The notes under the pieces are model-generated. The model did not search any database. It was not told the DNA's origin and worked only from the letters and a program-made list of their open reading frames with translations. This document shows, piece by piece, positions 1 through 35,934 of a stretch of 64,000 nt of DNA. The position numbers and the translations under genes are program-made. Within the stretch, counting starts at the first letter, position 1. Every line of letters starts with the position of its first letter. The stretch covers positions 1 to 64,000 of the forward strand of contig NW_026935558.1 in assembly GCF_032062105.1 (NCBI RefSeq). The letters are read 5' to 3'. The DNA comes from Saccostrea cucullata. Lineage: Eukaryota.

Positions 1-32
1 ATCTCGATCTTCAGATCAAATGTATATCGTTT

Positions 33-1311: not shown

Positions 1312-3180
1312 TCAGTCTCTGCTCCTGCGATTAACCACCTTGACCTAAAAAGAAAAAAGTAATATTCTGTAAATTAAATATTCACTAATTAAGTACAAGT
1401 ACAGTCAATAGTAAAAAAAAATGTGTGAACATTATTTTTCAGATGTTATTCGATCTCTTCATTCCTATGATACAGTTTCTAAAAATATCCCATATAGTAG
1501 ATACTAGAATATAAATCTGTTCAATTATTCTCACATATGATTTGTTGTCAATCTTTAAAAAACTTGTTTAAAAATTTGAAATATTTTGAAAGCTATGGAT
1601 TTTCAATCCATGCAATTAGCTGTAGCTGCAGCATTCGTTTTGATAACTTGGATACAAAATGCCTTAATTTTTTATGGTACTTAGATGAATTCAAGTGTAA
1701 GATGCACATCTCTGAGATTAAACAGAAATAATTACACTAATTAAAACAGAAGTATACATATGAAATATTAAAACGTACCGTTGACTCTCTTCTTAGATTT
1801 CTTATGTGGTTTTCCAGTCCCTGCATGGCTGGAAGTGGTACTGCAGGTCCGTCCTCTCCCATGGAGTGGTGCAGAAATTCACTGGCCTTCTTGGCTGTAG
1901 GTGCTGGAAACTGTCTTTCCCTTGCCAAATGTTGCCTCCACCACTCCACATCGGAAGAGGAAAGCTTGCCTCCATCTTCCCATTTCTGAAGGTCCACGTC
2001 CATGGCTTGGAAAACCCTTCCTCCCTTCTCGGTCATCTGTGTCTTTGCCTCAGGGTCCTCCTGGAAGGCACTGGCCAGCCCAGTGACGTCTACCTTCTTG
2101 TAAGGGGAGGATTTCAGGGGCCACTCCTTGTACGACATGAAGACTTGATCTCCCTCTCTGGTAAACTTGAACACATGGGGGGTACTGTGTCCCACTAAGT
2201 GCACACTAGAGGACAGTCCCAGCTGCCTGTAGTCCCAGATGTTCTCCAAATGCTCCACATGGGGTGTTGGGTTATAGGCCTCCCTTGATAGTTCCTGGAG
2301 CACTGGCAGGGTCTGGATGGGGGTCCTAGAGATGTGGACAGAGACCCGAGAAAACAGCTCGTCCTCGTGAGTGTGGCCCACCATGAGGAAGGAGAGTTTG
2401 ATCTGTTAAAAAAAAAAAGGAAAACTGATCAGGTCATTCATACCTTGAAACTAATACAATGTATTGGTATTCCTAAAAATCAACCCTTACGTAAAATAAA
2501 TATGTGCAATAAATGCAATTTTTTTGTTTTGTTTACTTTTTGGGGAAATATAAATTAAACTGCACATACCGGTATTATACAACACATACCCTCTTTACAC
2601 AAATACAAACTGAATACTTCATTTACAGTAAAATAATTTGAAGTACCGGGGTAAGGCAATAATCCAAAATAAAATACAATTTTGTTCATATGGCAATGCA
2701 AATAAAACTAACTTGATTTAAAAGTTTATTTCTATATACTAATAGTCGCCCGCATGGCGCAGTGGTTAGAGCGTCTGCTCAAGAGTCGCAGAGAAAGAAG
2801 TCGATCCTTTCATTGCGGGTTCGAATCCCACTGTGGGACGTGGAAACCGGTCCTTCGGATGAGACCGTATAAACCGAGGTCCCGTGTCACAGTAGGTGCT
2901 GGCACGAAAAAGATCCCTCACTGCTCAAAGGCCCTGAGTGCCGAGCATAGGACAAAAATTTGTACTTATAAAGAAGATTTAAACAGGTTTCCCTATATAT
3001 TTCTATGTAAAACTCTAATCGGCCATTTTGGCCCCACCCTTACCCCAGGGGTCATGACTTGAACAAACTTGAATCTACACTACTTGAGGATGATTTCACA
3101 TGAGTTTCATCTTTCCTGGACCAGTGTTTTTTGAGAAGAAGATTTTTTCAAAAATGCCAATAATTTTTCTCTAATTCATG

Positions 3181-3224
<44 letters not shown>

Positions 3225-3246
3225 ATTGAATCCCCTTCACCCAAGA

Positions 3247-3287
<41 letters not shown>

Positions 3288-6200
3288 GTGAGAAGAAAAT
3301 GAAAACGTGAAAAGTTTACAACAACGACGACAGACAACGGACAAATTTTAATCAGAAAAGCTCACTTGAGCCTTTGGCTCAGGTGAGCTAAAACTTATAG
3401 AAACAACAAGCCAAAAATTTACCTTCTTAACAATTCGTTGTTGCACAAGACTGGCCAGGAACCCCATAAGAATAACATTCTTATTATCTTTGGCTGAATT
3501 ATCTGCCTGGATGTAAAGAGTTGGAGGAAGCGACATGTCCTGTGGAAAAAAGAGCAATAAGATTACTGGTAATTGATATAATAATTAGAAAAAAAATGTA
3601 TAAGAAACATTTAAGCACAGAATGCTGTAGACACCTGGCTAAAGGATTAAAAAGAAGACTTAATTATTAAAAAAAAAAATATTTTGTTCATGGAATTTGA
3701 AATGCTCTTGAATGTTTCCTTTCCATGCTGTTAATTTCAATTTATAAAACAAAAATTTACATTGTTCAAAACATTTCAAAGATAGCAATAGGTTATGTGA
3801 GTGACTCAGTTGACTTTTTTAATTACAAATACGAGTTCGTATATGAATAATATCATCAATACATGAATTTGGGGAAAGTGTAATGCAACTTGATGCAGTT
3901 TATGTAAGTATGCCTTGCACCTTTATAAGTAGAAGAGTACAAGGTTTGTAGAATAAAATTATTTTACTTACATTGGAAACATCCTCTAGCACTTTGAGGA
4001 GGCAGTTGATGGTAATGTTCGCATCACATGGAAATTTGTCCGTCCAAGTAAACAGATAGGGTTTCTTCTGACCGTGCTCCAGAACGCCAGTCACATGGTG
4101 GTGAACTCTCGTTAGAGTGGCATCTCCCTATGAAGAAAAAAAAATTGTTGTAGATTTCATGACTCGTACTTGTAAACAGTACTCTCATGCTCCAAAAAAA
4201 AATTCTCTTTTTAAAAGAATCAACTTATTTAACCGTCTATTTTAATTTGAGAATTGATCACATTAGAACACAAATATGTTTCACCTTATGATATGTAGGG
4301 AATCTGGGCAGATTGGTTTTTGCCTGGTCCATGTTGTCTATTATAATAGACAAGTATTTGTCTGGACGATCTGCTGCCTTTTTGGAATGTTTGTAGTACT
4401 TCTCCCTGGCTATTCTACAGAGACAATACATATTGAAAATAAAAATCATGTATAACTAGTGCTAATTGTAACGGGGACCGTTACAGATGTTCCCCAAACG
4501 CCCCCAACTCCCTTTTGGTGCCATATTCCCTGTCAATTTCATAAAATAAGACAAACTCTATGCATTTGCGACTTTAACAACGTTTACCCAGAAGTGTACC
4601 AAGTTCATTCAAATTTGGCATTGCACGCGTGCGCATGTGAATGCATGTGCGTAATGACCATATCATCTTGTCTACACAATCTATATATTTTAATGTATTA
4701 AATATAAAAGTATTTAATCCAAAAGTATTTAAAAAATACGCTCATTCAAGTGTATTTTTGATTCTCATTTCACGTGCACGCATTTGCATACATGAGCATG
4801 GTGACCATACCCTCTTGTAGTAGTCCATTATATCTATCTATGTTCCAAATCCCATCCTGTTTGGTTGAAAACCAAGGGAGTTATAGCTATTTAAAGTTTA
4901 AGCCAATCAGATTGCAGCACACGTGCATGCACGTGTTTTCATGACAATTGCTATATACCATGTTGTAGGATATCCTAATGCATGGCTATGTTCAAAATTT
5001 CAAAGGATTTCGTGAAAAAACAAGAAAGATATTGAGACTTTAGTTTCAGCCAATCAGAACAAAGCGCACGTGCATGCGCGTGAGATCTTGCTATTTTGAC
5101 CATATCATCTTGTCTACGCTACTAATATATCCTTACATTATAAATTTTAAAAGATTTCATCAAAAAATAGAAAAGTTACGGCTGTATCCATTATATTTGT
5201 CATTTCACGTGTTGCACGTGCGCGCTCTTGCAAGCACGTGCGCGCAAAATGGCATGTTGACAATGACATCTTATCTACATTTATAATATGTCTATATATT
5301 CTTAATATCAAAGCATTACATCAAAAAATGGAAAAGTTACGGCAATTTCAAGTATATTGGTCATTTCAGGTGTTGCACGTGCGCGCTCTTGCAAGCACGT
5401 GCGCGCAAAATGACCTTCGTTCCGCAAATCTACATAACATGCCTACTTACCCTAAAAAGGTTTCCCCTTAATCGGATGTGTACTTTACAAGATCATTCGC
5501 GGACAAAATTTTCCCGAGAAGAAAAAAAATAATAATAACTAGTGCTAATTGTAACGGGGACCGTTACAGATGTTCCCCAAACGCTCCCCGAATCCCTTTT
5601 ATAGTCATATTCCCCGAAAGCGTAATTAAATAAGACAAACTTTATGCATTTGAAACTTTAAAAACGTTTACCCAGAAGTGTACCATGTTCATTAAAATTT
5701 TATCACTGCACACTTGCGCATGTGAATGCATGTGCGTAATGACCATATCATATTGTCTAAACAATCTATATATTTTAATATGCTAAATATTAAAGTATTT
5801 AATCCAAAAGTATTAAAAAACCGCTCATTCAAGTGCATTTTTGATTTTACCCATTTCACGTGCACGCACGTGCATACATAAGCATGGTGACCATACCTTC
5901 TTGTAGAAGTCCATTACATCTATCTATGTTCTAAATCCAACCCCGTTTGGTTGAAAACCAAGGGAGTTATGGCTGTTTAAAGTTTCAGCCAATCAGATTG
6001 CAGCATTTGTACACGCACGTGCATGCATGTGCATGGTGACCATACCTTCTTGTAGAAGTCCATTATATATATCTATGTTCCAAATCCCATCCAGTTTGGT
6101 TGAAAACCAAGGGAGTTATAGCTATTTAAAATTTCAGCCAATCAGATTGCAGCGCACGTGCATGCACGTGTTTTCATGATAATTGGTATATATCATTTTG

Positions 6201-9200
6201 TAGGATATCCTAATGCATGGCTATGATCAAAATTTCAGAGGATTTCGTCAAAAAACAAGAAAGATATTGAGACTTTAGTTTCAGCCAATCAGAGCGTAGC
6301 GCACGTGCATGCGCGTGAGTTCTTGCCATATTGACCACGTCATCTTGTTTATACTACTAATATATCCTTACATTATGAGTTCCAAACCATTTCATCAAAA
6401 AATAGAAAAGTTACGGCAATATACATTATATTGGTCATTTCACGTGTTGCACGTGCGCGCTCTTGCAAGCACGTGCGCGCAAAATGACCTTCGTTCCGCA
6501 AATTTTCATAACATGTCTACTGACCCTAAAAACATTTCACCTTAGTTGGATGTGTAGTTTACGAGATCATTCGCGGACAAAAAAGTGCCCAGGAAGAAGA
6601 AAAATAATAATAAGAAGAAACAGAGTAAAAACAATATGTTCCCCAACTTCGTTTGGGGAACATAATAAGCATGAACAGTTTTCGTAATAACAGAATGCTG
6701 CATGTATAAATTAACACATTCATAATTTAGCCAAAACACCAGGTATGGATTGGTTGGCATAGTCGTGAATTAGCGCAACATATTTAGCACTAAAGATAAA
6801 AATTAACTATTTATTGTCTATGAGATGAAGTAAAATTTTTATCTGTTAGCTGTTATTGCTGTTCAATTAGCATGTCCATCTGGCTGATAATAGCTAACTA
6901 AATTTGGCTCAATGTTCTAGGCCTGATAAAATGGCAGACCAAAGCATGTTTATGAAAACATCATATCATATTTATTTCTTAATGGTAACCATGAATTAAC
7001 ACATTGCTATCTGAACCAAAGCCGTTAAAAAATATAGAGCATGCTTTTTTAAGTACACACACTATATTTATTTTATAAGGCTATATAAAACTGAAATTAC
7101 TGTTCTCAGACCTGCTCATATCCAATTCGAGGTACCCGCTTTCCAAATTTATTATATTTTTGATAAAAGAAAAATTTGGTTATGTAGGCATAATCTGGGA
7201 AAAGAAGTTTGCTCTCACTTTCCAGTAGCCATTAAAGAGACTTGTATACTTTATTTTAAAATACATTTGAAGATAATGTGTACGATATTCAATTATAAAC
7301 TTATAAGTACTGAAATGGATAGTGTAAATCTGTTAATCAGACATGGAAAGGACGTAATGAACGAAAAAATTTTAACATAATCGCAGAGAAAATTCAGGTA
7401 AAAAATACCTCCTTCATTGAATTCATCACCAATAAAAAAATGAATTAAGAAGAAAAAGCCACACATCTACATCTTTTTTTGGGAAAAATGGCCTGAGAAA
7501 TGGAGAATTAATTTATATACTCTAAAATATGTATTTTAAAAAAGAATATACATACCGTGCCATCAGCAAGTGTGCCTTTTTCTGTTGCTGGAGTTTCACC
7601 CTTTGCTCTTTGGTCAGCTTGCTGAGTTTCAGCTGCTTGAACATGGAACATTCTTTGCATTCAGTGAAAGCTGATCGCTGAAATAAATAGAAAAATTGTA
7701 AGTAACCACACATGATTCATTATCAGGACATTGGTGTTTATTATCCTATATGTCATCAAATGTATAGATCAAGTTTGGAACATGGGATAGGTGGTTTCTC
7801 CTACATTTTTTTTCCATGATAAAGAAATATGTGCTCTTAATTGTTTTTTTTTTCAGCTCTTTCTTTCATTTTGTTCAACATAAAAAACTTTAAAATTATT
7901 TTTTTTTGTGAAGTTGCCTCCTCCTCCTTTGAAATATGTCCATGTAACTTAAATAATGTGATAATTGTATGCACATAAAAGTATTCCTAAATTTATACTT
8001 ATTAACATACAATTTTTTTCATTTTGATAAATATTTCATGATTTAAACATTCATTTAGCATTTTTAGAATTCAAAGCAATGAAAACAAGAGGCCCATGGG
8101 CCACATCACTCACCTGAGTAGCTTTGACCATGCTCTTCTTTGCAAAATGTCCCCCTTGTAATACATGTTGTGACCCCCACCCTACCACATAGGTCATTAT
8201 TTGGATAATTTAGAATCTACACTTACCCGGGGTTCTTTCATGTAAGTTTCAACTTTCCCGGCACAGTGGTTCTTGCAAAGAGGATTTTTTAATGACACCA
8301 ACTTATTTTTTTCTTTTCTTGATTATCTCCCTTTGTGGTGGAAATTGACCCTTTATTTAAAGAAAAAATCAAACTTCCTTTCTCCAAGGATTCTTTGTAC
8401 CAAGTTTTGTTAAAATTGGCAGAGTGGTTCTTGAGGAGAAGTCGAAGGTGTGAAAAGTTTACAGATGGACAAACAGACAGATGGATGGACAGACGGCTGA
8501 CAAAATTTGATCAGAAAACCTCACTTGAGCCCAAAGCTCCGTTGAGCTAAAAAAGTAGGGAAAAAGAAAGTTTACATACCTCTGAAGCTTTCATATCAGG
8601 ACATCTCTCCTTCCACACCCTCTGAAAATGCCTGTAGCTGAAGGGGGTTTCATGGTCGTCTGCATACTCCTTATAGGCACTCTTCTGGGTCATGCAAGTG
8701 GGAAGCATGATCTTGGCCCTGTCTGGCATCTGTTCTCCTTGTTTGTCTCCCAGAGATGAAAGGAAATTGGACAAATGGGAAACACGCTCATGGCCATACT
8801 TCATGCCTATCCTTCGATCAGCTGATGGATTCTTGGCATACTTCTGCTCTATGTATCTGTTGAAAAAAAATCAACATGAAAAATATGAGCAATATCAGAA
8901 TCTTCTAAGTTAATCTTTAAACTAAAGTTTTTTAATTATCATTTTAAATCATATAATGATCTGATTAAACAAGTTGAGTCTTTGAAAAATGGGAGATGTG
9001 GTTGTTGAAGATTTATTTGGGACAGATAACTTAATTTCCACAGTCAAACCAATGAAAAAATTCTTATGGTTACATGTATGGAGTGTAAAACATAAAAAAG
9101 ATTTAAAGACACAACTATTTCATACAACATTCTATAATTCAGAGATTTAATCAAGTTAAAATAAAATCTACAAAATAACTTTCACACATACAAAAAAAAT

Positions 9201-10816
9201 GTGCATTTTCATGCAAAACTTGTCACTAACCATAACAGTAGCAAGTTCTCAACATGTTTGTCAAAAACATGCATCACATATGTAGTAAGACTGCAAACCA
9301 AATCATGCATACTTGAGGAATTCAAGAAGATGTGCTTTTACATTATTTTCTCAAGAATTAAAATTCCAATACGTTATATTGAATTATATTTCATAAATGA
9401 ATTAGAATGTGACTGATATATGGGCCGACAAATCCTAGTAGCTGGAACGAGACAGTAATTTTTAAAAAATTTTTTCTGTTTATTCAATTTTTTTTAAAAA
9501 ATCACATTTACTGTACTACTACTTTTTAACTACGGGTACCATTGTGTATTTAAATTCATACTGACCTTTAACTATCATGCTAAGTTAAATCCATATAATG
9601 ACATCAATCTTTTGATTGAGTACTCTGTTTTTGTTCTTTCTTTTTTTTTTTAGGAAAGGAGGATTAAAATAAGTGCAATGGAGAACATTTTTTCATTTGA
9701 ATGTTAATTAATTTCTCTAAAGTAAATTTGGGAATCAAATCTATTTAATATATTCCCCTATCAAACCAGGAAATTTGCCAATGTTACCAAGACTAAATTT
9801 GAAATAATGATTCATATCACACAGTCTTACTTTGTCATACTATACATGTAATACTCTAATACTACATATTTAAATGCTTTGCCATTTTAATTCAAACATG
9901 TCAGGATGTATAGAGTAGAAACAACTAACATGACTATTCTTAGAATTAACTTCTGTGAATTTTATGAAGGACATGTATGAACATCTTTTTATCTTCCTTT
10001 TTTTTTTTAAAAGCAATCTGTCATGGCCCCTTAGGACCTTGTCTCCCTTACTATAAAGGAATGGAATTCTACCCAGCCTACTAAGATACTCAATGACCTA
10101 ACATGCATAATAAAGTTAGTACTTGACTTAAGTTTCTGCATACTCAATATCATACAGCTTTTCAAGGATACACAAATGCGCACAGAAATTTTGTCATCAG
10201 GAAACATAACAAACTTATGAATAAATATTAATTGCTAGCTCATTAAAAACATTAGGATTTTGACTTCTAGATACTGTGGTTTCATTAATATTCATTGAGC
10301 ACCAATTTACAAGGATTTCGTTGTTGAGCAGATCCACTAATTTAAATGTTCATTGAATTAAGTAATACATGTATGCTATTCAATTGTATCAAAATTGCTT
10401 TTTTTCCGCGAAATTATGTATCCTTGAAAATGTCCTTCTTATAAAATCATTGAAAATGGATACCAACAAAAATTGATGAAACCACAGTACTGAGATTATA
10501 GTGAAGAATTTTCAAAATAATTACCGTGATCTAGACACTCCATGAACTATACGCCAGCATTCACTGCACACTAAAATTCCAGCCAACACACACTGTTCTG
10601 CACAAACTTGTCCACGGTGAATTGCAATCTCCTGATTCTGCTGCGTGATGACCAGTTTCCAAAACTGCTTCCTGATGGAAAAAACTGCATTTGTGGGAAT
10701 CTTCTGCAAACACTTGGATGGACAGCACTTCTTCTTCAAGTCTTCACTAATGGTCTCAGTTTGAGTCTTTTCAAATTGCCTTTTCCCACATTTTTTCTTC
10801 TCATTTAGGACATCAG
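1312..10816 (-). CDS. DUF7869-type, Sola-related DDE/D transposase-like protein with Cys-rich N-terminus (5' exons not located)
   Basis: Nine GT-AG exons splice in frame: 10816-10525, 8856-8580, 7677-7556, 4414-4285, 4127-3972, 3539-3423, 2402-1779, 1344-1312 (TGA) give eight located coding exons, plus at least one unlocated upstream exon (the first starts in phase 1). Motifs: CCPSKC..VCSECWRIVHG, GEQMPD, CKEC, SIIIDNMDQAKTNLP, LYIQADNSAKDNKN, FLMVGHTHED-ELFSRVS. Confidence 0.8.
2745..2963 (+). mobile_element. tRNA-derived SINE with Deu/Nin-like central domain
   Basis: A box TGGCGCAGTGG (2755-2765), B box GGTTCGAATCC (2818-2828), then CCTTCGGATGAGACCGTATAAACCGAGGTCCCGT...AAAGATCCC resembling the Deu/Nin core. 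Confidence 0.75.
2970..3393 (-). mobile_element. Helentron/HINE element with ~166-bp oyster satellite-like units
   Basis: Reverse complement begins TTTTAGCTCACCTGAGCCAAAGGCTCAAGTGAGCTTTTCTGAT, then a (GTC)n-type microsatellite and repeated TGAACAAACTTGAATC/GAAGAAGATTTT units. Confidence 0.8.
4454..6666 (-). mobile_element. Head-to-tail dimer of a HINE-type element with internal ~140-bp repeats
   Basis: AACTAGTGCTAATTGTAACGGGGACCGTTACAGATGTTCCCCAAACG at 4454 and again at 5537; single 5' end hairpin ATGTTCCCCAACTTCGTTTGGGGAACAT ending near 6663 next to an (AAT/AAG)n tract. Confidence 0.8.
8084..8554 (-). mobile_element. Full-length short HINE
   Basis: AACAAGAGGCCCATGGGCCACATCACTCACCTGAG at the left end; (GACA/GATG)n then CTCACTTGAGCCC...GAGCTAAAA at the right end. 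Confidence 0.8.
10274..10487. mobile_element. Tc1/mariner-type MITE (214 bp)
   Basis: TIRs CTGTGGTTTCAT / ATGAAACCACAG, flanked by TA on both sides. Confidence 0.85.
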
Positions 10817-10849
10817 CTGGAAAAAAAGAATAGAATTAATATCCTGTCA

Positions 10850-10852
<3 letters not shown>

Positions 10853-10889
<37 letters not shown>

Positions 10890-11350
10890 GCTTTTACCAT
10901 TCTGTTCTTTACCACATTTCCCCCTTGTTATACATAATGCATCCCCACCCTACCCCACTGATCATAATTTAGACATTTTGAAATCTATACTACCCCATGA
11001 TCCTTCCATGGGCACATATGTTTCAGCTTTTTTGCCCAGTGGTTCCTGAGAAGAAGATTTTCAAAGATTTTTCCTATATATTTCTATGTAAAACTGATTC
11101 CCTATAATGGCCCCGCCCTTCCCCCGGGGGTCATGATTCCTGCAATTTAGAATTTACACTACCCCACAATGCTTCCACATAAGCTTCACTTTTTCTGGCC
11201 CAGTGGTTCTTGAGAAGAAGATTTTCAAAAAAAAATTTCTATATAAAACTTTGATTCCCCATTGTGGTCCCGCCCTTCCCCTGGGGGTCATTATTTGAAC
11301 AATTTAGAATCTAAATTATACCAGGATGCTTCCACATAAGTTTCAGCTTT
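10853..11350 (-). mobile_element. Truncated HINE with about three satellite-like units
   Basis: AACAAGAGGCCCATGGGCCACATCGCTCACCTGAG end plus repeated CCCAGTGGTTC..GAGAAGAAGATTTT units. Confidence 0.75.
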
Positions 11351-13710: not shown

Positions 13711-14576
13711 GATTTAGAGATTTAGAATGTTAATATAATAGTTCAAATATCTAACTTTCAAAAACTCAAACTGATTTGGTATATATTGACAATTAATATT
13801 TTATTTCAAAAATTTCAAATTTCTAAACAGGTTTAACATTTTGAGATTTTAGATTTCACCTTAAATATTTAAAATTCAAATTTCCAAAAACAAATTTTAT
13901 ATTTTAAACAATTGAGTTTTAAACATGTTTAATCTACTGTTAAGAAAATATACACTTAACATTCTTAAGTTCGGTAATATTTTTGTATTTTGGGGTATTT
14001 GAAATAAGCTTCAAACTTCTAAACTCGAACTTTGAAACGTTTTAGATTTTTAGAAATTTAGAATTTTGAATCAAATTTTCTAATTTCAAATAACCTAAAC
14101 ACACGAGTTTTAGAATTTTACTTTAAATATATAACATTTAAACCAGTTATGGTCAATTTGATATTTTGAATATTTGAAGTAAACTTCTAAAAACTAAAGG
14201 CGTTTTGGTTATTTTGAGTTTTTATATCAAAATTCTAAATGTCTAAAATCTAAATCTTTGAATGGTGGAAGTTGGAAGTAAATTTTAAATAATCAAAAGA
14301 CGAAGACGTTGAATTTATGATTAATAAACCATTCTAAACAAACAGAAGAATAAAAACTCAAAAAAAAAAAATTAAAATACAAAAACCATTTTTGGAATTG
14401 TGAATTTGGAACATTTAAGGTAAAAATGTAATATATATTAATTCTAAACCTTTTTAAAAATTGAAAGGTATATTTTTGAACTAAAATATTAAATTTCATT
14501 TACAAAATCAGTTTGGGTTTTTTGAAATTAAGATATTTGAACTTAAATATGTTAACATTTTAAAGCTCAAATCCAT
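13711..14576. repeat. Degenerate AT-rich foldback (long imperfect inverted arms)
   Basis: GTTCAAATATCTAACTTTCAAAAACTCAAACTGATTT (13741-13777) is the imperfect reverse complement of AAATCAGTTTGGGTTTTTTGAAATTAAGATATTTGAAC (14505-14542); complementarity extends on both sides. Confidence 0.6.
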
Positions 14577-21110: not shown

Positions 21111-21442
21111 CACCAAAAATAATAAATGTCTTTCTGCTACTAATATGAAAAAAATAGGGTAGGTAGGAGAATTTTAATTTTTAATTTCATTTAATTAATT
21201 GTATTTGTTGGATAGGAAGTACGAATTACTAAACCATATTAAACAATGTCTTATAGCAATATTATTGTTTAAAATAAGGAGTGTTTTATGAGTAGTTTTT
21301 AAACTTATACATGTATTTCATGAAATACCACTTGAATATATATTTTTCTGAATTTTCCTCAAAATCTGAATAAAAACTTTAGGGTTGGGGTAACATAGGG
21401 TAGGTCGGGAGCAGGAAACAAGACTATTTTTTATTTCTGGCC
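21111..21442. mobile_element. Degenerate PIF/Harbinger-type MITE, same family as 22675-23059, opposite orientation
   Basis: TAGGGTAGGTAGG internal motif and end AGCAGGAAACAAGACTATTTTTTATTTCTGGCC. Confidence 0.6.
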
Positions 21443-22674: not shown

Positions 22675-23059
22675 GGCCAAAATAAAAAATAGTCTTGTTT
22701 CCTGCTACCCAACCTGCCCTATTTTTTTGCACCGACCCTAAAGTTTTTTTTTAGCTTTTGGGGAGAAAATTCAAAATTTTAGGAATTTTATGTTTCAAAA
22801 GTGAAAAAAAAATACATATACTCAAGTTGTATTACGTGAAATAGGGGACCTATATGTTAAAAATATGGACTTTCATAAAATTCTAATTGAGTCGTGCATA
22901 GCTATGACATGTTCAATTTGGGTTTGTAGTAGTTCATAAACAAAGAAATACCATTGAATAAATAAAATAAAATTAAAAAATAAAATAAGTTTCCTACCTA
23001 CCTACCCTATTTTTTTCTGGCTGGTAGCAGGAAACAAAACTATTATTTTTTTTTTGGCC
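22675..23059. mobile_element. PIF/Harbinger (Tourist-like) MITE
   Basis: TIRs GGCCAAAATAAAAAATAGTCTTGTTTCCTGCTACC / GGTAGCAGGAAACAAAACTATTATTTTTTTTTGGCC with TAA on both flanks. Confidence 0.85.
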
Positions 23060-26000
23060 TAATAGCATGTGTATTCAGCTACATGATGTAATTATTTGTT
23101 TACACAATAATTCTACCTACTCCCACATGAAATTTTACTTTTTAATCTACCTGATTTTCAAAAAAGAAGGAATAGCTTGCAGAAACCGTTAATAGACTTT
23201 GTACTGTTCATAGAATAATTACTTTTAACATGATGAGGAAGGTCATATCATTTTTTTTTATATAAGAAACATTCCTTTTTAACTAAGGATTCAGCATGGA
23301 AAGACCAGTGTATCAGCTCAAATTACTTTATTTTTTAAGGTATGTCAAAAAATCATTTTTTATTCTAAAATTTGATTTTTAGTAAATCCCTAAAATTATA
23401 GGGATAATATTTCTTCAAATATCGGGACAAATCCTGATCAAAATTAAACTGATCCTGATCAAAATAAACGCAAAATGAATTTATTAAATTAAAATTATCA
23501 GTTATTACTTTGCTTCTTTCTAATTAATTTTTCACTAAGAAATCTTAGTGACTGACATGTTCAATGATTTTTTTACCATGTACAATGTATTCAGAGTAAA
23601 AAAAACTATTCTAGTTTGAATGATGTACTTCCAATACCACTCTCAAGATTGTTTGGTTAAAAGTAGAGAAGCTGCACTAGTTTGACTATATTTAGTTTTA
23701 ATTAATTGTACAAAAAAATGTAAATGAGGAAATTTTATATTGTGAAAGCTAATTTTTACGTTTCAAAATTTTGCGAATGACCATTTCTTTGTTCACACTT
23801 TCTAATAATTGTTGAATTATTTTTAATTGAAAAAAAATTTGGTGAATGCAATTAACTCGCAAATTTGCTAAAAAATTATTTACAGCAAATATTTCCAGAT
23901 TTACTGAAAGGTGTCATTTTTTTGACATGTGGGAGACAAAAATATAGTTATGATAATAATTATATTTCTGTAATTAAGGAATTGTGAATTTTTAATTGCT
24001 AGTACACAATGTAAATTTATTATTGATTATCATTCTGATATAAGGGAATCCATTTTGACGTTAAGCTGTGACTCAATATTTATACAGATTAAGAGAGAAA
24101 TGTATTTATTTTATCATGTTCATTTATCGATCATTTGCAAAATAAAAAAAAAAAAATGGCCTCTCTGTAATTGTTTATGAGATTCGTGTGTGGCACAGCA
24201 AAGTTTTAACGCTAAAACATATCTTATTCAATAATAATAAGGAATCTAATTTGAAGTAAATTTTAGAGTTAATTTTGGTATTTCATTGCTTAAACCTTTA
24301 CTATAGGGGTGTCTTAATGAATATAGCATATTCATTAAAATGTGCAACTTAAGCTGGTATTTTAATCAAGTTTTTCATTGCTGTATTATTAGTATTATTA
24401 TTTTCATTAAGTTATTAATAGTTGTTTTATAAGTAGTTCAGATTTAAGGGACTCTGATCCTCAGCTAGGAAGGACAACTCTTTAATTTATAATTTGATTT
24501 TAAAAATCTCAAAATGCAGCTTGAAAATTAAATTTTTCATGCAACAATTTTCTTTATATACCTCTCAATATGCTTCAAGGTTCTTTGAAGTTCTCAGAAA
24601 AGTCTAATGAAAAGTAGAAATTTTTGCCTGATAAAAGTATTTAACCATAGATAACAATGTTTATCAACATGATATGAATTAAAAATGAATTAAAAATGAT
24701 ATATGGAGCTTTGCAATGACAGGAGAATCTTTCTACACTTTGCATTGTAAAAATGATCATAGTAAATAAAAGGAATTATATCTATGGTTTTTATTTTTGA
24801 AATGTGTTAATTGATCAAATTTGAATTTGAAAATGCATACCATGTGTTTTTATTAGCAATACCTGAAAATATATAAAAGATTTACTAATTTTCTCCATAT
24901 AATATGATAAATTTGAATGATGAAGTATGACAAATTATCATGGGTATAAACGACGTTACTTTGAATATTCAGAGACATTTTTGTGAGCATTTTCATATAG
25001 TCTAATTGCTTGATTTTCAGAATCTGAGGATTGGAGTACCTTAAATTAAAAAAACAAATGTTAGTATAGCTCGATCCAGGTCCACCTGTCATAAAAACTT
25101 CACATGTGCGTGTCAAAAGACCTTACTTCAAATATCTATATAGTGATTATACAAGATGCAGTTATTGAATGGGCATGGACTAGGACAACATATATTACTT
25201 ATGATATTTGTCAGACATAACAGTGAAAATGTTGCCATGCAGGGTTACAGGCTTTCATATTAAAATGGAACACTATTTGAACATTTACAACATTAAGACT
25301 TCATCAGTGAGAATAAGATACCAAAACAAAGAATAAAATTGGTATATATCACAGAGAAAATTATCAAACAACACTTAATTTTCTGTTTTGTCGTACTTCC
25401 ATTTCCTTTTTAAAGAACAAGGTTCACTTATGGCCTTTTTTTGGCCCAGTATAATTCTGAAAATCTGACACTGTCTGGCTTTTGAAATGCATTAAATATT
25501 GTTTAAATTTTTGATAATTGCATATCTATCAAAGATTACCTAATTTTCTGGCTAGTTAATACTTTAAGTCATCACAAAATGTGTCAATTTCCTCAAATTC
25601 TGTTAATGTCTACAAAAACAGCAAGCTATTTTATGATGTTTAATATAAAGGGCATGTATTTTTTGAAAATCTTCTCCTCTGCTCCTTGGTCTAACATACT
25701 GATGATCTAAGTATAGGTATATAGATATACGGTACAGAAGGCAGGCCAGATGACCTTCCAAAATGATTTTCATGGCCCCTGCATCAGAGTTACATTAATG
25801 TGGATGGGTTTTAGGATTATACTGAAATTGAGTAAATGCTTTGAAATCTGCTCTTTGGTATTAATCAAAGACTTATGGTGATCAAGGGTATCTTTTCCAA
25901 AATTGTTAAATGTGTCCCCAAGTCAGGGGTTTCTGTGGGATGGGGACTTATTGATTGATTATAAATTGCAAATGATTTTTTTTCCTGCTCCACATTTCAA

Positions 26001-26300
26001 TTTGGGTATTAAGTAATTAAAGTAGGAATGCGGACATTAAGATGAGCAATGGCACCTTAAAGCCATTCATGGCACTTTAAGTCAGTCTGTAGAGCCCATG
26101 TGGATTTCATGGCATCCAGTTTAAAACATTAACATGATAAACATTCAATTTTGTTTGAAAATTGTTGCATATGATACTCATGAAGATGACATATAAGGCA
26201 TGTCGCCCCTAAGTAATATGATTGTTCACAGAGTACAAATTAGTACCTGTATTTAAAAAGATTTTATTATAACAATAATTTACATGGACTTCTATTGTAG

Positions 26301-29300
26301 CGTAATGTCGATGAAAATGAGGAAGTTACCGTGAAAGCTTCAACAACAGCATTTTATGTGACTGATGTGACTTTCAAGTCTTTGCATGGGCTGCAAGTGA
26401 AGGAGTTCCTAGACGATTTCCCTCAGGACAGCAGGTAATGAGGACTTGCTAATAATTTTTCAAAATATTCTTAATTTAAGGGCTGCATTTCATTTCCGGA
26501 ATTTTCATTTTCGACATTTTTTAATTTTCATTTCCAACATTGTTTTGTTTTCATTTCAAACATTTTCAAATGCATACACATAGAACTTTTATTGAAAGAT
26601 CTGAATACTTTACTTTTGAAAATTTTAAAGAAAAAATAAATAAATTTTTGAAATCAATAATCTGACTTAATTAATCTATCAATGACTTGGACATAAGTGT
26701 GGTGTTGTCACTAACATTTAATTTAGTGGACTTTGTGGTCATTGAATTCTTTTATCTATACTTGCTAGATGTATGCATATATGTGTATATTTGTTTGTAA
26801 TAAATCCTTTTAAAATTCCATTTTCACTTACTTAGGAAACATTGAATTGCTGTGTAGACAAATGCGGGGAATGAAAACAAAATTGTGCCGGAAATAATAA
26901 CAAAAAAAATTGGAAATAAAATAAAAAAATGTCGGATATGCTATGTATATTTCCGAAAATAAAATGCAGTGTAATTTAAGATTATAGTGCCATCAGATGT
27001 TCATAGACAAAATATCACTTTTTAATAATTTAATTGTATATAACATATAAGAAAAGTTCTCAGAGCTTCAGTGTGTTCAGTGTGACAAGATTTACTGTAT
27101 GTACTTGGTGGAGGAAACACTTGCTTTCAGAATCAAAATATCATGAATTGTATATACAGGATTTTTAATCTGAATGTTGTTTCTAATTACTAGGTGAAAT
27201 GACAGCCCGAAAGATGAGGAAGAAGAGTGATTATCAACACCTTCGTTCCTTCAAAGAAGAAGTTGAGGTAATATCTATTTTCTTTTAATTGTACATAAAT
27301 GCGTGAGACAGTAATGTCCATGCTTGACAGTATTGTCCATGCTTGTCTTTGGTCACATTTTTAGCTTTAGCTTTTAGCAAACTTGGATTGGATGGATATT
27401 TTTTTTCTTGAATAACTCAACAGGTTAAGTACGGGTTAAAACCCAGTGTTTCTTAAGTGGAACAAAACGCTATATTATTCATAAGGACATTGAATAAACA
27501 ATTTTATTATATGACTGAATAATTTCCATCTCTATGATTGGCTGAGATCCAACTATGTTAGAAAAATACTACGTTGTATTGACCTGCACGTGACGCTCCA
27601 GGTCAATACAAGGATTTATTTCATCTACATTGATCCAGAAATAGATTGGGAAATTCCAAATTGATATAAATTGTTTTGGAAAGCTATTTAAATGACTATT
27701 ATTTTTTTTCATGTGAACAAAACATAAAGTATTTTAGGGTGTGGGTGGTAAGAGGGGATGCCGGGACCCCCTCCAATACTTTTACTGAACAACAATTCTT
27801 TTTTTACTTTTTGGCAGTCAGTTTTCCCTGATAATGCTCATTCCTTTCAAAATTTATCCTATAAAAAAGACTGACATTATATATTTTTTTTCATGGCAAC
27901 TAAACTTGATTTAAAAAAGAAAAAACATTTCAAATTGATACGACTGCCGACTGGTAAGGTTTATTCACATTTTAATTCTGCTTCTCTTTTGTATTTGGCT
28001 AGGACTTAATAAAATGCAGACAAGTAATGAGCTTTATCATTTTATCACTGAATCATATAATAAAACAATTATTGCTGTTTTTTCGGTCAATACAATGATT
28101 TAGCCATCTTCGAAGTACAATATTCACCTCGCCCTTCGGGCTCGGTGAATATTGTACTCCTCAGATGGCTAAATCACTGTATTGACCTAAAAAAACAGCA
28201 ATAATTGTATAATATTTAAATCTGATAAAAAAAAGATCAGGAGAGGAATGCAATCAATGTTATTTAAATTTGGATATAGCTGCAAAGCTGTTTCATTTCA
28301 AATGTTTTAAAAATGTTATAAATAAAAGTGGTTTTGATAATTAGATTTAATTCTTTTCCATATGTGTATCATGTTAGGAGGTTTTTCTTATCAATGTAAT
28401 TTAATTAAATTTGGTCTTTGATTTTAGGTTTTGAGGAACCTTCATCCTGAGGCGGATCTCATTAAGGATGATGAGATGCTGAATTCTGGTCTTAGAGAAT
28501 GGAGACGGGAAGCTGAATTGGCACTAAACATCAATGAAGTAATGAAATGTACTTGACATCTATATATAGATTTCTATCTCAACCTCTCTAATGTGTTTGT
28601 AAACAGGGATAAGATCGTTTTAAAACTATAATGATTGGACTGTATTTGTCAATTTTTAAGAATAAAATTTATATGAACGGTATCTTTGCTACATTTTCTT
28701 ATCAAAGTTTGGCTGTAGTCTGTCTGTATGTCTGCCTAAATCTGTCTGTCTGTAAGCATTCTTTTAACTTCAAAACTACTAGGCCATTGTCTAACAAATT
28801 TGTCACAAATGTTTTTTTTTTTTTGTTCACAGATATATTTACATAAAAAGATTATCAGTAAAATTACAAAATCTAAACTTTGATATGATTAACAGTTTAA
28901 CCAATTAAACTTTTTGTGGTTAACAGATTAGCAATTCTGCATTCAATTATCATCTCTAAAAAAAAAAAAGATTTACATTTGGTTAAATGATGACTTGACA
29001 GGGGTTAATTTTTCAATCATAGCTACTTGGCTTTGGTTAACACTGAGCAATATGACCCATAGGTCTCTCTTCATTTACAGGGTCATCTGGGTGGTCTAAT
29101 GAAGGAGGCATTGAGTGTTGCTTGCCTCAGCAAGAGGTGTTTCCTGTGGGCCATGTCCATTATGGAGGCGTATAAGGAGTGGAAGCTTAAACGACAGACC
29201 AACAACAAGGTGAACAGGATGCTGTTTGTTCAGCTTCCTGGGATGAAGAATGAAGAGGTCCTCTTCAATCTACTTCGTCAATTCAGGGGCGGGGAACTCA

Positions 29301-31809
29301 CCAAGAACGAATTCAATGAGAAGATGAAAGAGCAAAAGGTATTTTATGATTTGCTTATTCTAAAACAATGAAATACTTTATTTCTTATTATAAAATTATT
29401 TATTGAAACATTGCAAAACTATATACAAATTTAAATATTATTACATGCACAAATAATATACTGTGATTGGGGCATGAGTAATAAGGTACTTTGAAAAAAA
29501 AAAATTGTCAATAATAAAATAAAATTATATTTCATTTAATGATTTGTTATTTCATTTACAGTCTTTGGCTGTTCCAAGCAACAAAAGGCGACCAACCAAG
29601 GTAAGAGAAAATGTTTCATGAGTGAAATCCTTTCCACATTAATCATTCATATCTTCATGTTTTAAAATTGAGAACTTTCAACACATCTTTGATTTTTGCA
29701 AGACAGAACACAAAATTATGTTTTTACCTCACCTGAGATAGGTTTAAGAACATTACTGATGAAATTGAAATTTATTTTATAGTAGGATATGAAACAAAAG
29801 AGTTTCGAAGTTTTACACAAGAAAATCTTAAATCATCTCCTCACTTGTATAACCATAAGACAGAAGAGATTTAACTTACAGATAGTTTAGCTTTCAGATA
29901 GTTTTGAAGATTCTAAAATGGGAAAAGTGGGAATTATGTTGGGTCATTGGCATCGATCTCTATGTATAGAAAGATATAAATATAATATTAATACACTTTG
30001 CATATAAAATACATTTTGTTTTAGCCTAGGTCAGTTTTTTCAGATTTTAATTGAACATTTTAGGGCGATCCTGGGCCTCTTAAAAAGAAAATAGCAGACC
30101 TTGAGAGCAGGAATTCCATGCTGCAGAAACAAGTCATCGACTTAAAGAAGAAACTCATGGTAAGATTTTAAAAAACTAAGCAAGACAGTTTAAATAGGTT
30201 TACTGTAGGATTTTTTAACTATAAATACTGAGGACTAACTGATGGTAAACAAAACATTCCATATTTATCAACTGAATAAAGTGTTTTATATACTCTGTAA
30301 TTCAAACACAGTAATAGAATATTTTTTATTGTATCATTAATGAATGTCAACTTATTAGAAAAATATTAACATGCTTGATTTATTCCAGGAAACAACAAAG
30401 ACAGATGCTGTTGATGTTTATGTAAGTTCCTTCATTCCCTCTTAAAATCATGCTTATTGTTACTTTTTTTTGTTAACTGAAACCATAACATTTAATTTTG
30501 ATAATTGTCATTTAAAGAAATGAATATCTAAATGAAAGATTCTTGTTTTCATATTTTGTGTTCTACTGAACTATTGCATTCTGGATTAAAGAAATGTTAT
30601 GAATATGATATTAATTATTGTGTACTGAAAAACATCTTTTTTGCTCATTGTATTCAATCATTTTTACATTTAATTTCTATAGGCCTTTGAAAGTGATGAT
30701 GCAAGTGATGACATAGAGGTTGCTGCTGTACTGCCTCCTTTGCAAGAAAACAGAGTAAGTTTAATGAGATTTATACCTTAAATTTTAAATATGGCCAAAG
30801 ATAGTTAAGACTTTACCTGTAAAAGTCTGCCCATTGAATTGAATTTACAGTGGAAACCAGCATTTCCCACATTTAAAATAGACTAATGTAGATTCAAGTG
30901 TGTACCCCTTTGTGGTAGGAACACAATAGAGATTAAAGTTATACACTTATCAAGAATTGCAGCATTATTATTTATACAGCTCCTTGTAGGAATTTATTCT
31001 TTGGCAATTGAAATACAATTTACTTTTTTATTTTAGGAGGAATCCAGCTCTGAAGGAGATTCAGATGACAGCCTCTCCGTGTTGATACCAACTATCAACT
31101 ACATGAGGTATGCATAAGTTATATTAACTTTATTAGGCCTGGATCGATAGATCCGGGGCGTATATTTTGTCCTGTCTATTTTTCTGTCTGTTTTCAACTT
31201 ATAACCTCCACCTTAACTTTTGAACCATGAGAGATAAGAGATTTCCTATTTGGTATGCATACTCCACTAATTAGGTTCTTTAAAATAACACCAAGGGCAA
31301 TGACCTTGCGATATTGACTGACCTACATGTTAAAAATAGCTTTTTCAAACTAAATATGCCATAACTTTTGAACTCCTATTTTACCCATTCAAGTGACTGT
31401 TACTAAATGCTAAAAGTAGTCTTTTTTGCTACACATCTTTTAATTATAATGAGTCTCTTTTTTTATACAGAATATATTGACAATCAATATTAATTGAACT
31501 TTTTTGTTTTATCTTAGGACGCCTGCTCTAGTGACCAGTAATGCTGTAAGTTATCCTTTCTTTTTGACGCATTTTGTTCCAGATTTAAACACTCCTGCTA
31601 TGATTGAAAGAATTATAATGATATGCCTAATATAAAAGAGATTCAACTAATAATGTAGGTTTAATTCACAATTTTTTTTATGAAGGTATAGAATATGTCT
31701 AAAATCCTAATCGTCTTTTATGTTAAGGGGGACTTAACTTTCTTAATCATGTTTTCATATTGACAAAGTATTCTTTTTATTTACAGAAGGATGACCACAC
31801 TGTGATAGG

Positions 31810-31846
<37 letters not shown>

Positions 31847-33778
31847 GGCGCAGAGTCTAATGAGGTTAATATATACCTTATTTGATATTAGAGAAATAAG
31901 CAGTAAATTCCTTAGAAAATGATTTGTACTGCATGATTATACTTAGAATATGGCATGGTTATACATGTATCTAACTTTTCTTATCAGGAAGCTCTTCTAC
32001 AGACATTCGTAGACTTAGAAGAAGACACCACAACAGAGGTATATTTTTTATGAATTTAAAGAAACAAATGCTCTTGCTTCATGACGAGATTATACATTAA
32101 ACAGGACTTGTTAAATGTCAAAAGTGATCAAATTCAACTAAAATGAAAAGTTCAATGTACCTTGAAAATTCGATCTACTGTGTATGAAATAAAAAACATT
32201 TGGTTTTTTGGTTTACATGCCGATGAACATGTCTTTCAATTTATTTTTTTTTTATTTTCAACTTGGCCTTAAAACAGAAATTTTCCTTTGTTCCTTTAAA
32301 CAGAAATTTTTTATAGTGTTTCCATTAAATCGTCAATTAACATATGTTTATTAAATAACGTCTAATCAAATACCTTTCTTTTCAGTTTTCAGAGCTTAAA
32401 GCTGGGGACCTTGTCCTTGCAAAAGATGAAGATGAATGGTACGTAAACAATTCAGATCAAATATCTTTTGGATGAATGCTTTTTTAATAGGTGTACTGAT
32501 AAATATTGTTATATCATGATTAAAGGATTTTGAAAAAGCATTTTTATTTATTTAAGCAATTATTCAGTCTTTAAAAAATGTAAACAAGGGCAATAACTCC
32601 TCTGTTATCATTGAATATTTTCTACTAGTTTTTAATAGTATCCCTGATATTCAAAATACCAAAAAAGTACCCAAAAATAGCGAGTATTAAGAAGCTATCA
32701 GCACCAGAATTATGCATAAGAACCACTTTATGCCTAATTTTCATAATACTGTTAACAAAAAATGTGCATTTTTTTATGTTGACATTCTTCTGTTAATTTA
32801 TATCTACCATCTTAAATATTCATTTTTTGCAATAATTTGAAAATTTAAACTATGTTAAATGAAAATAATTTTTAACATTGAATGCTTAAAATTCTAAGGG
32901 TGGTAGACCTTAAAAGGTAATAAAATAATGAATGTTCCAATCTTTTATTTTTGATATTTTATATAGGTTCAAAGCCACTGTGATCGTGTGTGAGGCACAG
33001 AAGTACAAAGTCCACTACTTTGGTTATGGGGCCCATTTCGACAAATGGGTCTCAAAAGAAGAGGTCAAACTGTACTGTTTTGTAAGTATATTTTGAGTGT
33101 ATAATAAATGAATAACATTCTACATAAGTGTCGGATTCAAATTGATTGGGGGGGGGGGGCTAAAGAAACAAAGGAAGTTAAACCCCAATTTTCATTAATG
33201 TGATCTTTGCTGATGAAATAGTGCTCCCCCTCCCAGTTCCACCTATGTTCTAAGAAATTCCTAAAATATGTTTAATTGAACAAGATCAATTTATATTCTT
33301 CATCTTATCAAGGTAGAAGATGTAAGGGGTAAAATATGTTATATAAATTGCTTTAAATTAAATATGAAATATTTATTGTTCAATTTTTTTTCAGGCTGTT
33401 GGAGAGAAGCTAAAAGCACGGTGGGAGGATGGATTCTTCTACAAAGGGGAAGTCCAGAGTGTTAACGGAAGAGGTAATTTTTGTTAAAGTGTAATTATAA
33501 AATATTGTATTTGTGTGTATCTCCAAGTTTAATTCATAAAATCAGTGGTTAAAAGAATTGATATCCATAAATGCCACAGTAATACTGGGATTTTAAGTTG
33601 CTTTACAGAGTGCAAAAACTTCATCATTTGGCTTTGATTGTAAACCATATATTCTTGAAACTTGTTTTGTTCAAAACAATGAATACAGATATTATATTAT
33701 ATTTATCTGTTTTTAGAAGTAACCGTGCTGTTTGATGATGGTGATGTGGGGAAAGCAACATGTCTGAAGTTCTGCTGA
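26301..33778 (+). CDS. Multi-exon chromatin-reader-like protein: repeated helical module, coiled coil, acidic tract, tandem chromo-barrel/Tudor domains (5' end not located; apparent frameshift near 26420)
   Basis: GT-AG exons 26301-26434, 27194-27267, 28428-28538, 29081-29338, 29562-29600, 30064-30159, 30389-30421, 30683-30754, 31037-31107, 31518-31545, 31787-31864, 31988-32038, 32386-32438, 32967-33081, 33395-33473, 33717-33778. From exon 2 on all phases match. C-terminus: LKAGDLVLAKDEDEWFKATVIVCEAQKYKVHYFGYGAHFDKWVSKEEV-KLYC-FAVGEKLKARWEDGFFYKGEVQSVNGREVTVLFDDGD. Confidence 0.8.
27505..28213. mobile_element. Non-autonomous element with long terminal hairpin (Crypton-like)
   Basis: ~144-bp near-perfect palindrome 28065-28208 centred on CACCTCGCCCTTCGGGCTCGGTG; TTTTATTATATGA at the left end is inverted relative to TCATATAATAAAA before the hairpin; TGATTGGCTGAG near the left end. 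Confidence 0.55.
31130..31372 (+). mobile_element. pearl/CvA-like HINE fragment in an intron
   Basis: CCTGGATCGATAGATCCGGGG hairpin, (CTGT)n, then repeated TAACTTTTGAAC unit. Confidence 0.55.
31811..31843 (+). repeat. (GAT)11 coding microsatellite (poly-Asp)
   Basis: In frame within exon 31787-31864. Confidence 0.9.
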
Positions 33779-35580
33779 GGTAAGAAAAATTGTAGAGGGA
33801 AAAGTTATTTAAAAGAAATTTCGATCTTTTCTTATATATTATTTATAAATAAAGGAGACTGGGGTTTGAAAAATTAACCACATGCACTGTCAATTGGCAA
33901 AATGTTCCTATATTTTGGTTTGAAATTTAAACATTTTTGTAAATTTTTATATGAAGCTAGTCTTCTTCTAAAGGAGATCAAAAAAGTATTAAAAAAGGTT
34001 GCTACCACCAGCCCCTTTAACCATGCATCAGATGAAAAAAAATTCCATATATATTTTCATTGTGCTTATTTGAATTAGGAAAATGGTATTTTTTCTTTAA
34101 TTTATCTTATCTAAGCTAGAAAATTTGCATTTGCAACTGAATTCAAAGTACATAATTATATTTTTTTCCCTGGGCTATTGTCAATGAAGTGAACTTGATG
34201 GTTTATAAACCTTAGCTTTTTAGGTGTTGAAAGATTATCATACTATCAGCATTAATTTCCTTTTCTTTTTTTTTTAGCATCATCGCTGTTTTCCTCAGTC
34301 ATCCCATGGCCATTTCATCATGTTTAAAGCAAAATAACAAGAAATACTTAAAGTTGTCTTTATATTGTTATGTAAATATAAATGATATCTGTTACTGTAC
34401 AATAAATATTTATGCTTCTTTATTTTGTTGTTTTCATTTTTAGAGCTTAGTCTTTGGTGAAAAGAGCACTGAGGTACTCTGTATGCAATCGTAATTTTAT
34501 TGACATTCAAAAAAATTAATACAGCTTATGTACACGCCTTATCCATTAGTGTCACCGTAGCCTGTGAGGCTGTGTGTGAGTTGGGGGGAGGGGTCTTAAA
34601 ACTTCTTATATCGTATATTTAGTGATTGAGCTGGTGATAACAGCAGACTTTATTAGGTTTTAATGAAAATTCAGAGTAGAGTAAGCATACTTATTCACAA
34701 AGGGCATATCCATTTGGCAAGACACTGCCCTCCATAGATCATATTGATCGGGATCGTAATTCCTCTAATTGTAACACCAAAATGGACGTACGAAAAGCAA
34801 ATCATTGGTTCAAAGTGAGAAATCAGCTTGAAAAGTATGGATTAGTTCAGGTTAAATCAGTGTTATTAGACGAGAGACTTAAACTTGTTCAATACACTTA
34901 TAAATATGTATAAAAGTACTGGCTGCATTACTTGTAATGGAATATTTGAACAATTGACAGGAAGGGTCACTGGCACTGGAAGTAAATGTAAAGTATGCAA
35001 TTATGTAAAAAAAAAAAAAAGACTTTATACATGCGCATACTATATATTTACATTCAGTTTTAGTGCCTGTGGACAGGGTAAACACATTATTCAGTTGCCA
35101 TTTTGCTAGAAGTGAAATGCATTTTAGTATTTAATATGATTCTGAAAAATAGCAAGAGAGAACACTTTGAAGAACTGAATGTTTGTAAAAAATGTTTCGC
35201 CCTGCTCCACCAAATATTCGGAATATTTATAAATCAACAGGACAAAACTTGGTTTATTATGTCTCGACCATTTTTACCATAACAAAACTTGACCTATATA
35301 TTCATATGATAGATATAACAAATTTCATTTCAATGTTTACAACCACTGCAAAGAAAATGAATGGCAACTGATGGTGGACAGACAATCATCAATAGCAAGA
35401 CAATATGCCTTATTGGGGGGTAAAAAACAAAAAATGGTAATGAAAAAAAAATATACTTTGAGAATACTACATGTATACTACATGTTACATTCTTCGGCAC
35501 TAGAAATAAAACACAACTCTTAACAGTGCTTAAGGTTACTTATTGTGTTAATTTCAGATTTGTTATATATTTAATAGGCT

Positions 35581-35932
35581 GGTGGGATAATTTCTCCCAT
35601 CACATGCCAAAAATATGGGATAAATCCTATATGGACATCAATTAGTGGGATATTTTGTCCCGTGGGAGAAATAATCCCATTTTATCAAAAATCATGGGAT
35701 TTTTTTTCCCATGTGGGAGAAATTATCCCACAGTACTTTTTCTCCCATGGGATTTTGGTGGGATTTTTGGTGGGATGAAAAATCCCGCCATTCTCCCGTG
35801 GGATTTTAGGTTTTGACTGAGGTTTCTGAGAAAACTACTACAATGTGTAAGTTGAGATTGACATGATGAGGTCAGAATAAAAAATCCCACCAAAATATAG
35901 AAAAAAATCTAATGTAGGTCTTTTCGAAAGGG
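35581..35932. mobile_element. Putative right terminus of a CCC...GGG-ended (CMC/EnSpm-like) DNA transposon with subterminal repeats
   Basis: About 20 GGGA/TCCC motifs in both orientations, ending CTTTTCGAAAGGG followed by TA. Confidence 0.55.
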
Positions 35933-35934
35933 TA

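Follow-up and report, generated by a model that had tools for sequence, protein, structure and literature searches.

Do two genes that point away from each other at the start of an oyster contig belong to the host, or to a single mobile element that carried both into an older transposon? We asked this of the first 64,000 bases of Saccostrea cucullata contig C17695 (hereafter the window, meaning the whole stretch analyzed), where a DUF7869 transposase gene on the minus strand diverges from a plus-strand gene whose product ends in two barrels resembling histone readers, and where a fragment of a Harbinger transposase gene follows further downstream. The initial annotation of this DNA had proposed that a single element longer than 35 kb carries both genes and interrupted the Harbinger, and the proposal gained independent support from the recurrence of the gene pair, from inverted ends in Ostrea edulis, from non-coding relatives and from empty sites. 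Positions 1-35982 very probably represent most of one copy of a giant oyster DNA transposon of the cut-and-paste type, at least 36 kb long, with its left end past the start of the contig. Genome searches covered the 1.17-Gb assembly and those with window sequence were run one exon at a time; P0011, P0042 and their relatives are database entries for the spliced proteins.

The right end of the element was located at 35982, where the sequence reads ...GTCGCAGTGTT at the tip of a terminal inverted repeat of ~270 bp (35713-35982) rich in TGGGA/TCCCA. Eleven other copies were alike up to ...AAATGTCGCAGTGTT, the equivalent of window position 35982, and diverged beyond it into differing flanks, which moves the terminus 50 bp outward from the GGG at 35932 where it had been set. 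Read from outside inward, the terminal sequence is AACACTGCGAC..., and the left end that had been predicted, CCCTTTCGAAAAG, turned out to be internal to the inverted repeat. The dense subterminal GGGA/TCCC motifs described earlier were borne out by counting (19 in 35540-35982 vs ~1.9 expected from the window average). The repeat is the outermost part of a right terminal region (35291-35982, plus strand) common to a high-copy non-coding family, and leftward of 35291 the other copies diverge from the window. A search with 35540-35932 (393 bp) returned 391 first-look candidates. Copies were scored at 39 places elsewhere in the genome, and every one was full-length, with 95-96% identity.

The sequence directly beyond this end belongs to the interrupted Harbinger. 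Positions 35983-36335 (plus strand) hold the rest of an intron and a DDE_Tnp_4 exon at 36102-36335 (PF13359, E 2.7e-10, profile positions 35-96), and the upstream exons were missing from the preceding sequence, as the initial annotation had noted. Five paralogous Harbinger copies, 88-97% identical, align from the first base after the element end, and they run uninterrupted across the equivalent of 35982/35983 through the conserved intron and the preceding exon (...GFPSIQLQ|gtattaag...). These five paralogues are empty sites, and the element therefore interrupted the Harbinger, having inserted into an intron of its transposase gene. About 90 bp inside the Harbinger fragment (36287-36376) is 96-100% identical to very many genome sites (1427 first-look candidates) and is probably a young piece of a miniature inverted-repeat transposable element (MITE) or short interspersed nuclear element (SINE).

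To relate the terminal region to the rest of the element, we compared the window with large non-coding elements on contigs C4820, C7584 and C15746. The C7584 element, the sole copy observed whole, is 17,210 bp long, has 270-bp inverted repeats at 96.7% identity and is flanked by TATA on each side; C15746 has a left end equivalent to that of C7584 and a truncated right end, and the final 20 kb of the copy on C4820 contained no open reading frame (ORF) of at least 120 residues. The window has only two pieces in common with these three, collinear and in the same orientation: the terminal region, matched over 35291-35982 (95-96% identity in the terminal 690 bp), and a 114-bp piece of the transposase first exon (10623-10736, minus strand; 93-95%), which in C7584 lies ~730 bp inside the left end. 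Sharing a first-exon piece and a terminus in collinear order is the pattern expected of an autonomous-type element and its non-autonomous derivatives, and we infer from these alignments that the high-copy non-coding elements derive from the gene-bearing one. We had initially read the TGGGA-rich end as a fragment of an unrelated high-copy repeat, a reading overturned by the C7584 element, the first-exon match and the O. edulis ends described below. The window copy differs from its relatives by 4-7%, so that the burst of its lineage was not very recent.

C23224 was rejected as a deletion derivative, the part in which it differs being merely a satellite-like high-copy repeat. On C13940, two right-end regions (at 9626 and 36867) are inverted and 27 kb apart and have 1945 bp in common at 99.5%; their flanks do not match and they were not accepted as one element. 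The pair may reflect a rearrangement into a palindrome, or else two separate elements that point outward. On C15599 (376191-379396), last-exon fragments of both genes lie 375 bp apart, collinear with the window (transposase 71%, second gene 77% identity), and this locus resembles what an old internal deletion would leave of a related element.

The minus-strand gene (1773-10814) has at least seven coding exons, in agreement with the spliced transposase gene first proposed. Three of its exons matched PF25273 (DUF7869) in a Pfam search at 43-74 bits each, and the database protein P0042 (LOC134243211, 468 residues) scored 219.5 bits against a cut-off of 26. The window encodes 459 of the 468 P0042 residues, in exons at 8804-8580, 7677-7555, 4413-4285, 4127-3972, 3539-3423 and 2402-1776, and a Cys-rich first exon lies upstream (10814-10524), homologous to the N-termini of the longer relatives P0062 (611 residues) and P0063 (653 residues). 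In an alignment of 39 relatives the motifs DxMDQxK, QxDN..NKN and GHTHEDxDQ were near-invariant, and the D..D..HTHED motifs that had been picked out by eye are these columns. Candidate acidic residues in P0042 are D142/D145 (DxMDQ), D224 (QxDN) and E263/D264; the distance from the second D to the HTHE glutamate is 39 residues, and no insertion domain lies between them.

The AlphaFold 2 (AF2) model of the transposase, with a mean predicted local distance difference test (pLDDT) score of 77, has an RNase H-like core at residues ~120-297. The best matches of this core in the PDB were all integrases or transposases (prototype foamy virus integrase, Z 7.1; Rous sarcoma virus integrase, 6.9; Mos1, 6.7; IstA, 6.4; TnsB, 6.3), and MuA was also among the solved structures matched; the Z scores, 5.3-7.1 overall, are moderate and point in one direction. 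As modeled, the product is an RNase H-like DDE/D transposase core. Among the 39 relatives no Pfam family besides DUF7869 was found at E≤1, and other Pfam and NCBIfam transposase models gave no convincing match to the 39 DUF7869 proteins scanned. The wider family has a patchy distribution that takes in molluscs, cnidarians, echinoderms, amphioxus, an alga and a liverwort, and stop codons interrupt many of its S. cucullata copies. No close orthologue of the window transposase was found in the congener S. echinata, where the best match had 52% identity.

The plus-strand gene (26331-33778), hereafter gene 2, encodes a helical N-terminal domain, a coiled coil, an acidic linker, a chromo-barrel and a Tudor barrel. 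Its database protein P0011 (404 residues) was retrieved with the 90-residue exon at 29099-29371 as the query against 1.8 billion representative proteins, and is encoded residue for residue by 15 window exons (27199-33778). A further 5' exon is likely at 26331-26438, with the FYVTD..FK.LHG sequence of an N-terminal exon known from relatives. The family has in common a conserved helical domain of ~130 residues, the coiled coil, the acidic linker and the two C-terminal barrels. A relative of 610 residues, P0029, carries three C2H2 zinc fingers ahead of the common helical domain and barrels, which hints that the gene 2 family is able to acquire a DNA-binding module.

The two Tudor-like barrels that the initial annotation had seen at the end of this gene were upheld by Pfam and by fold matches, which name them more exactly as a chromo-barrel and a Tudor. 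The Tudor-knot model of Pfam matched P0011 at 22 bits (cut-off 20.8) and its relative P0018 at 34 bits; Tudor_2 scored 22-30 bits, under its cut-off. In the AF2 model residues 306-404 form two barrels with pLDDT >90, and a Foldseek search with them gave 134 PDB matches at E≤0.001, with tandem Agenet/Tudor readers on top. The first barrel resembles the chromo barrel of MRG15 (Z 8.9, root-mean-square deviation 1.2) and the second the Polycomb-like Tudor of MTF2 (Z 8.8, deviation 0.9), and the pair resembles the tandem Agenet/Tudor readers ADCP1 (E 4e-6) and SGF29 (E 1.5e-5). The C-terminus of gene 2 is thus predicted to be two consecutive five-stranded barrels of the Royal family. Aromatic residues are conserved in both barrels in the family alignment.

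The co-occurrence of the two genes, which the initial annotation had proposed to check, was found in O. edulis, in GCA_053477285.1 and at paralogous S. cucullata loci. In O. edulis (GCA_947568905.1, OX387704.1), the gene 2 relative P0015 has a DUF7869 gene diverging from it ~5 kb away, with the same exon structure, and 3.1 kb past gene 2 there is a TGGGA/TCCCA-rich stretch, 68% identical to window 35583-35985, that ends ...TTAAATGTCGCACTGTT (L043:28540). The OX387704.1 copy lies near 74.05-74.09 Mb. A second copy, on OX387709.1 near 89.47-89.51 Mb, is 99.7% identical to the first over 13.9 kb and has an inverted end 4.3 kb past the transposase gene (L078:20890), in a different flank. The two ends both read ...TTAAATGTCGCACTGTT outward and agree over 247 bp at 98.4%. 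Combining the two copies gives an estimated element length of ~35.5 kb in O. edulis, and the 99.7% identity of the pair suggests recent movement in that species.

The head-to-head pair is also present in GCA_053477285.1. There (L046 20486-48548), ~40 kb of inserted genes interrupt gene 2; one of these has a weak phage-integrase match and is possibly a Crypton or DIRS element. A second S. cucullata lineage, at 58-68% protein identity, has the pair on C3264, C21704 and C18178 and only the transposase end on C3001; these four contigs, whether haplotigs or true copies, stay 98.5-99.8% alike for at least 3 kb past the transposase gene. From contig to contig the spacing of the two genes varies by 12 kb, and the transposase of this lineage, P0062, has the full GHTHEDVDQ motif. 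No gene 2 relative lies within 10 kb of the more distant DUF7869 genes in Mytilus coruscus and S. echinata, and the S. echinata gene (P0071, 648 residues; JAVQLB010000009.1) is located in an intron of a Focadhesin gene.

Several observations weigh against reading the window as a mobile element of this kind. The left end and the target-site duplication of the window copy are off the contig, so its completeness is not demonstrable; the window starts at base 1 of the contig, and no left end was found in the window by pattern search, inverted-repeat search or flank-vs-flank alignments. The element start at 1312 given by the initial annotation was therefore without basis. A target-site duplication is known from one element only (the TATA of C7584), the other copies giving one flank, and an empty allele of the C7584 element was not found. 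The upstream half of the interrupted Harbinger copy is on no other contig of the assembly. The last exon of the window transposase lineage occurs once, the next best matches being 76% identical (partial) and then 58-59%, so that recent self-mobilization of the window copy is not demonstrated. P0042 reads GHTHE--DELFS and lacks two residues of GHTHEDxDQ, including a D conserved in 37 of 38 relatives, while the D-x-D-[Q/A] part is kept in 37 of the 38; with this near-invariant catalytic motif two residues short, the window copy may no longer make an active transposase. For gene 2, no recognizable relative of the helical N-domain was found, and any binding of histones by the barrels or of DNA by the N-domain is putative.

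These points bear on two other explanations. The genes could be a host pair, a domesticated transposase and a chromatin reader driven by a bidirectional promoter, with the 690-bp piece as an unrelated, truncated high-copy insertion nearby. This would fit with the many introns at positions conserved between species and with the annotation of both as ordinary genes, as well as with the window lineage being single-copy in the assembly, the transposase motif being damaged in a reading frame that stays intact, and the end of the high-copy family being represented by its terminal 690 bp only. However, O. edulis has the same end in the same place and orientation, plus an inverted end past the transposase, in two copies on two chromosomes, and the high-copy family carries 114 bp of the transposase first exon at the identity level of the end itself. 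The failure to find a close orthologue in S. echinata and the several paralogous pairs and pseudogenized copies in S. cucullata also argue against a host pair, which we regard as very improbable.

Alternatively, the window copy could be a rearranged or chimeric remnant produced by deletion or recombination, or a misassembly, and so would not have entered the Harbinger as one 36-kb insertion. The region is dense in nested repeats, only 1.8 kb of contig is left past the transposase gene, the upstream Harbinger half has no contig, and C15599 shows that rearrangement can bring fragments of the two last exons together. Against this, the 2.2 kb from gene 2 to the end and the size of more than 36 kb agree with the O. 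edulis values (3.1 kb and 35.5 kb), and the order and orientation of first exon, gene 2 and end are the same in O. edulis and in the non-coding relatives. We consider a chimeric origin unlikely, and the single insertion of one large DNA transposon into the Harbinger remains the reading that we favor.

How would such a transposon work? The DUF7869 transposase would bind the inverted repeats and cut and paste the element, with the gene 2 protein as a putative accessory factor, comparable to TnpA of En/Spm or to the Myb-like protein of Harbinger. The barrels of gene 2 could connect methylated histone tails with the transpososome or with the resident element, and its N-terminal domain perhaps binds the subterminal TGGGA repeats. 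We suggest, tentatively and with more doubt than confidence, that elements combining DUF7869 with a reader are a hitherto undescribed lineage of animal DNA transposons of giant size (~35 kb), in which the reader either tethers the transpososome to a chromatin state to choose sites or sits on the TGGGA-rich ends to modulate silencing.

The initial annotation had compared the element with the CMC/CACTA type, a label that does not fit, given that the transposase matches DUF7869 only and has no insertion domain in the 39 residues between the second D and the HTHE glutamate. In EnSpm-type transposases a large insertion domain separates the second D from the E, and their elements have ends of 5'-CACTA/G, short inverted repeats and a 3-bp (or 2-bp) duplication. 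Like En/Spm (CACTA), the oyster element is large, has a transposase with a DNA- or chromatin-binding partner, dense subterminal repeats and CACTG in its ends, and has many internally deleted non-autonomous relatives. In contrast to En/Spm, its transposase matches PF25273 and no EnSpm-type Pfam family, CACTG begins two bases inside its end (AACACTG), the inverted repeat is ~270 bp rather than ~13 bp, and the single target duplication seen in the family is TATA rather than 3 bp.

Zator transposases, like that of the oyster element, have a compact DDE core without an insertion domain. Zator is said to be related to the prokaryotic ISAzo13 and has 3-bp target duplications, with 33-bp inverted repeats in amphioxus Zator-1 (PMC10045372, PMC12905397). 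It occurs in bivalves (PMC10294476) and in amphioxus (Zator-1, PMC12905397), two groups in which DUF7869 is also present. Unlike Zator, the oyster element has a ~270-bp inverted repeat, a 3-bp duplication was not seen, and the cited Zator papers mention no second gene. In one ESM Atlas cluster of DUF7869 proteins, 11% of the members also match DDE_Tnp_ISAZ013 (PF07592). The PF07592 model had no match in the S. cucullata genome, and no ISAzo13 family was among the matches of the 39 DUF7869 proteins to Pfam and NCBIfam. A link to ISAzo13/Zator is at most a lead, for which the Atlas cluster is the sole hint and direct model searches gave no support.

PIF/Harbinger elements need a second, non-catalytic Myb-like protein beside their DDE transposase. 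The oyster element is similar in its two-gene design, with a DDE transposase and a putative non-catalytic partner, but the transposase families are unrelated (DDE_Tnp_4 vs DUF7869), the oyster partner has a chromo-barrel and a Tudor and no Myb/SANT, and the element is about ten times larger. The fold of P0011 residues 306-404 is like that of the histone readers SGF29, ADCP1/AGDP1, 53BP1 and MRG15 and of the Tudor of PHF1/MTF2/PHF19, from which it differs in having 16-28% sequence identity, in the remainder of the protein having no recognized relative, and in the location of the gene within a transposon. According to a 2025 paper (PMC12477816), no transposable element had been reported to carry a Tudor domain before Gypsy-10_Ec32 of Ectocarpus, a long terminal repeat retrotransposon with a C-terminal Tudor. 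The two are alike as mobile elements bearing a Tudor-type reader domain; in the retrotransposon the domain is fused to the polyprotein, whereas the oyster DNA transposon has a separate accessory gene with a chromo-barrel and Tudor pair.

In a literature search no paper was found that describes a DNA transposon with its own DDE transposase and a histone-mark-reader-like gene, and "DUF7869" appeared in none of the papers searched. This Pfam domain of unknown function, present across animals, algae and plants, gains a mobile-element identity, on evidence that includes the ends, the non-coding relatives and an insertion that can be compared with its empty sites. For its cut-and-paste type, the element is also uncommonly large. 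Chromatin-reader modules are known in retrotransposon integrases, where they direct integration, and a DNA transposon with its own reader gene makes the reading of host chromatin by such elements directly testable. Should the reader steer integration or counter silencing, the oyster element would become the first example, among DNA transposons, of a Tudor-type module for targeting or anti-silencing. Its large derivatives, which number in the hundreds, are also relevant to the annotation and assembly of oyster genomes.

The remaining parts of the window copy contain repeats of other origin. At the contig start, an unrelated high-copy short repeat (17-222; 2070 first-look candidates, 85-88% identity) probably explains the assembly break. 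It is followed by element sequence downstream of the transposase gene and without a left terminus (252-1772, minus strand), which is 73-80% identical and collinear with a degenerate paralogous copy on C15111; the homology to that copy stops at ~252, and the terminal repeat found no match in window 1-1772. The space between the two diverging genes (10815-26330) is AT-rich and 15.5 kb long, vs ~5 kb in O. edulis and GCA_053477285.1. It contains a satellite array at 16596-18188 (147-bp unit, 10.9 copies), which, flanks included (16326-18526), recurs in reverse orientation within the C4820 non-coding element at 94-97% identity and is missing from the C7584 and C15746 copies. The spacer between gene 2 and the common terminal region (33779-35290) has a nested 135-bp high-copy repeat at 33887-34021 (1428 candidates). 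Beyond the Harbinger fragment, hAT-like gene remnants lie at 37820-40854 on the minus strand, where one ORF matches zf-C17orf113 (E 9e-12) and another the hAT C-terminal dimerization domain (E 7e-5).

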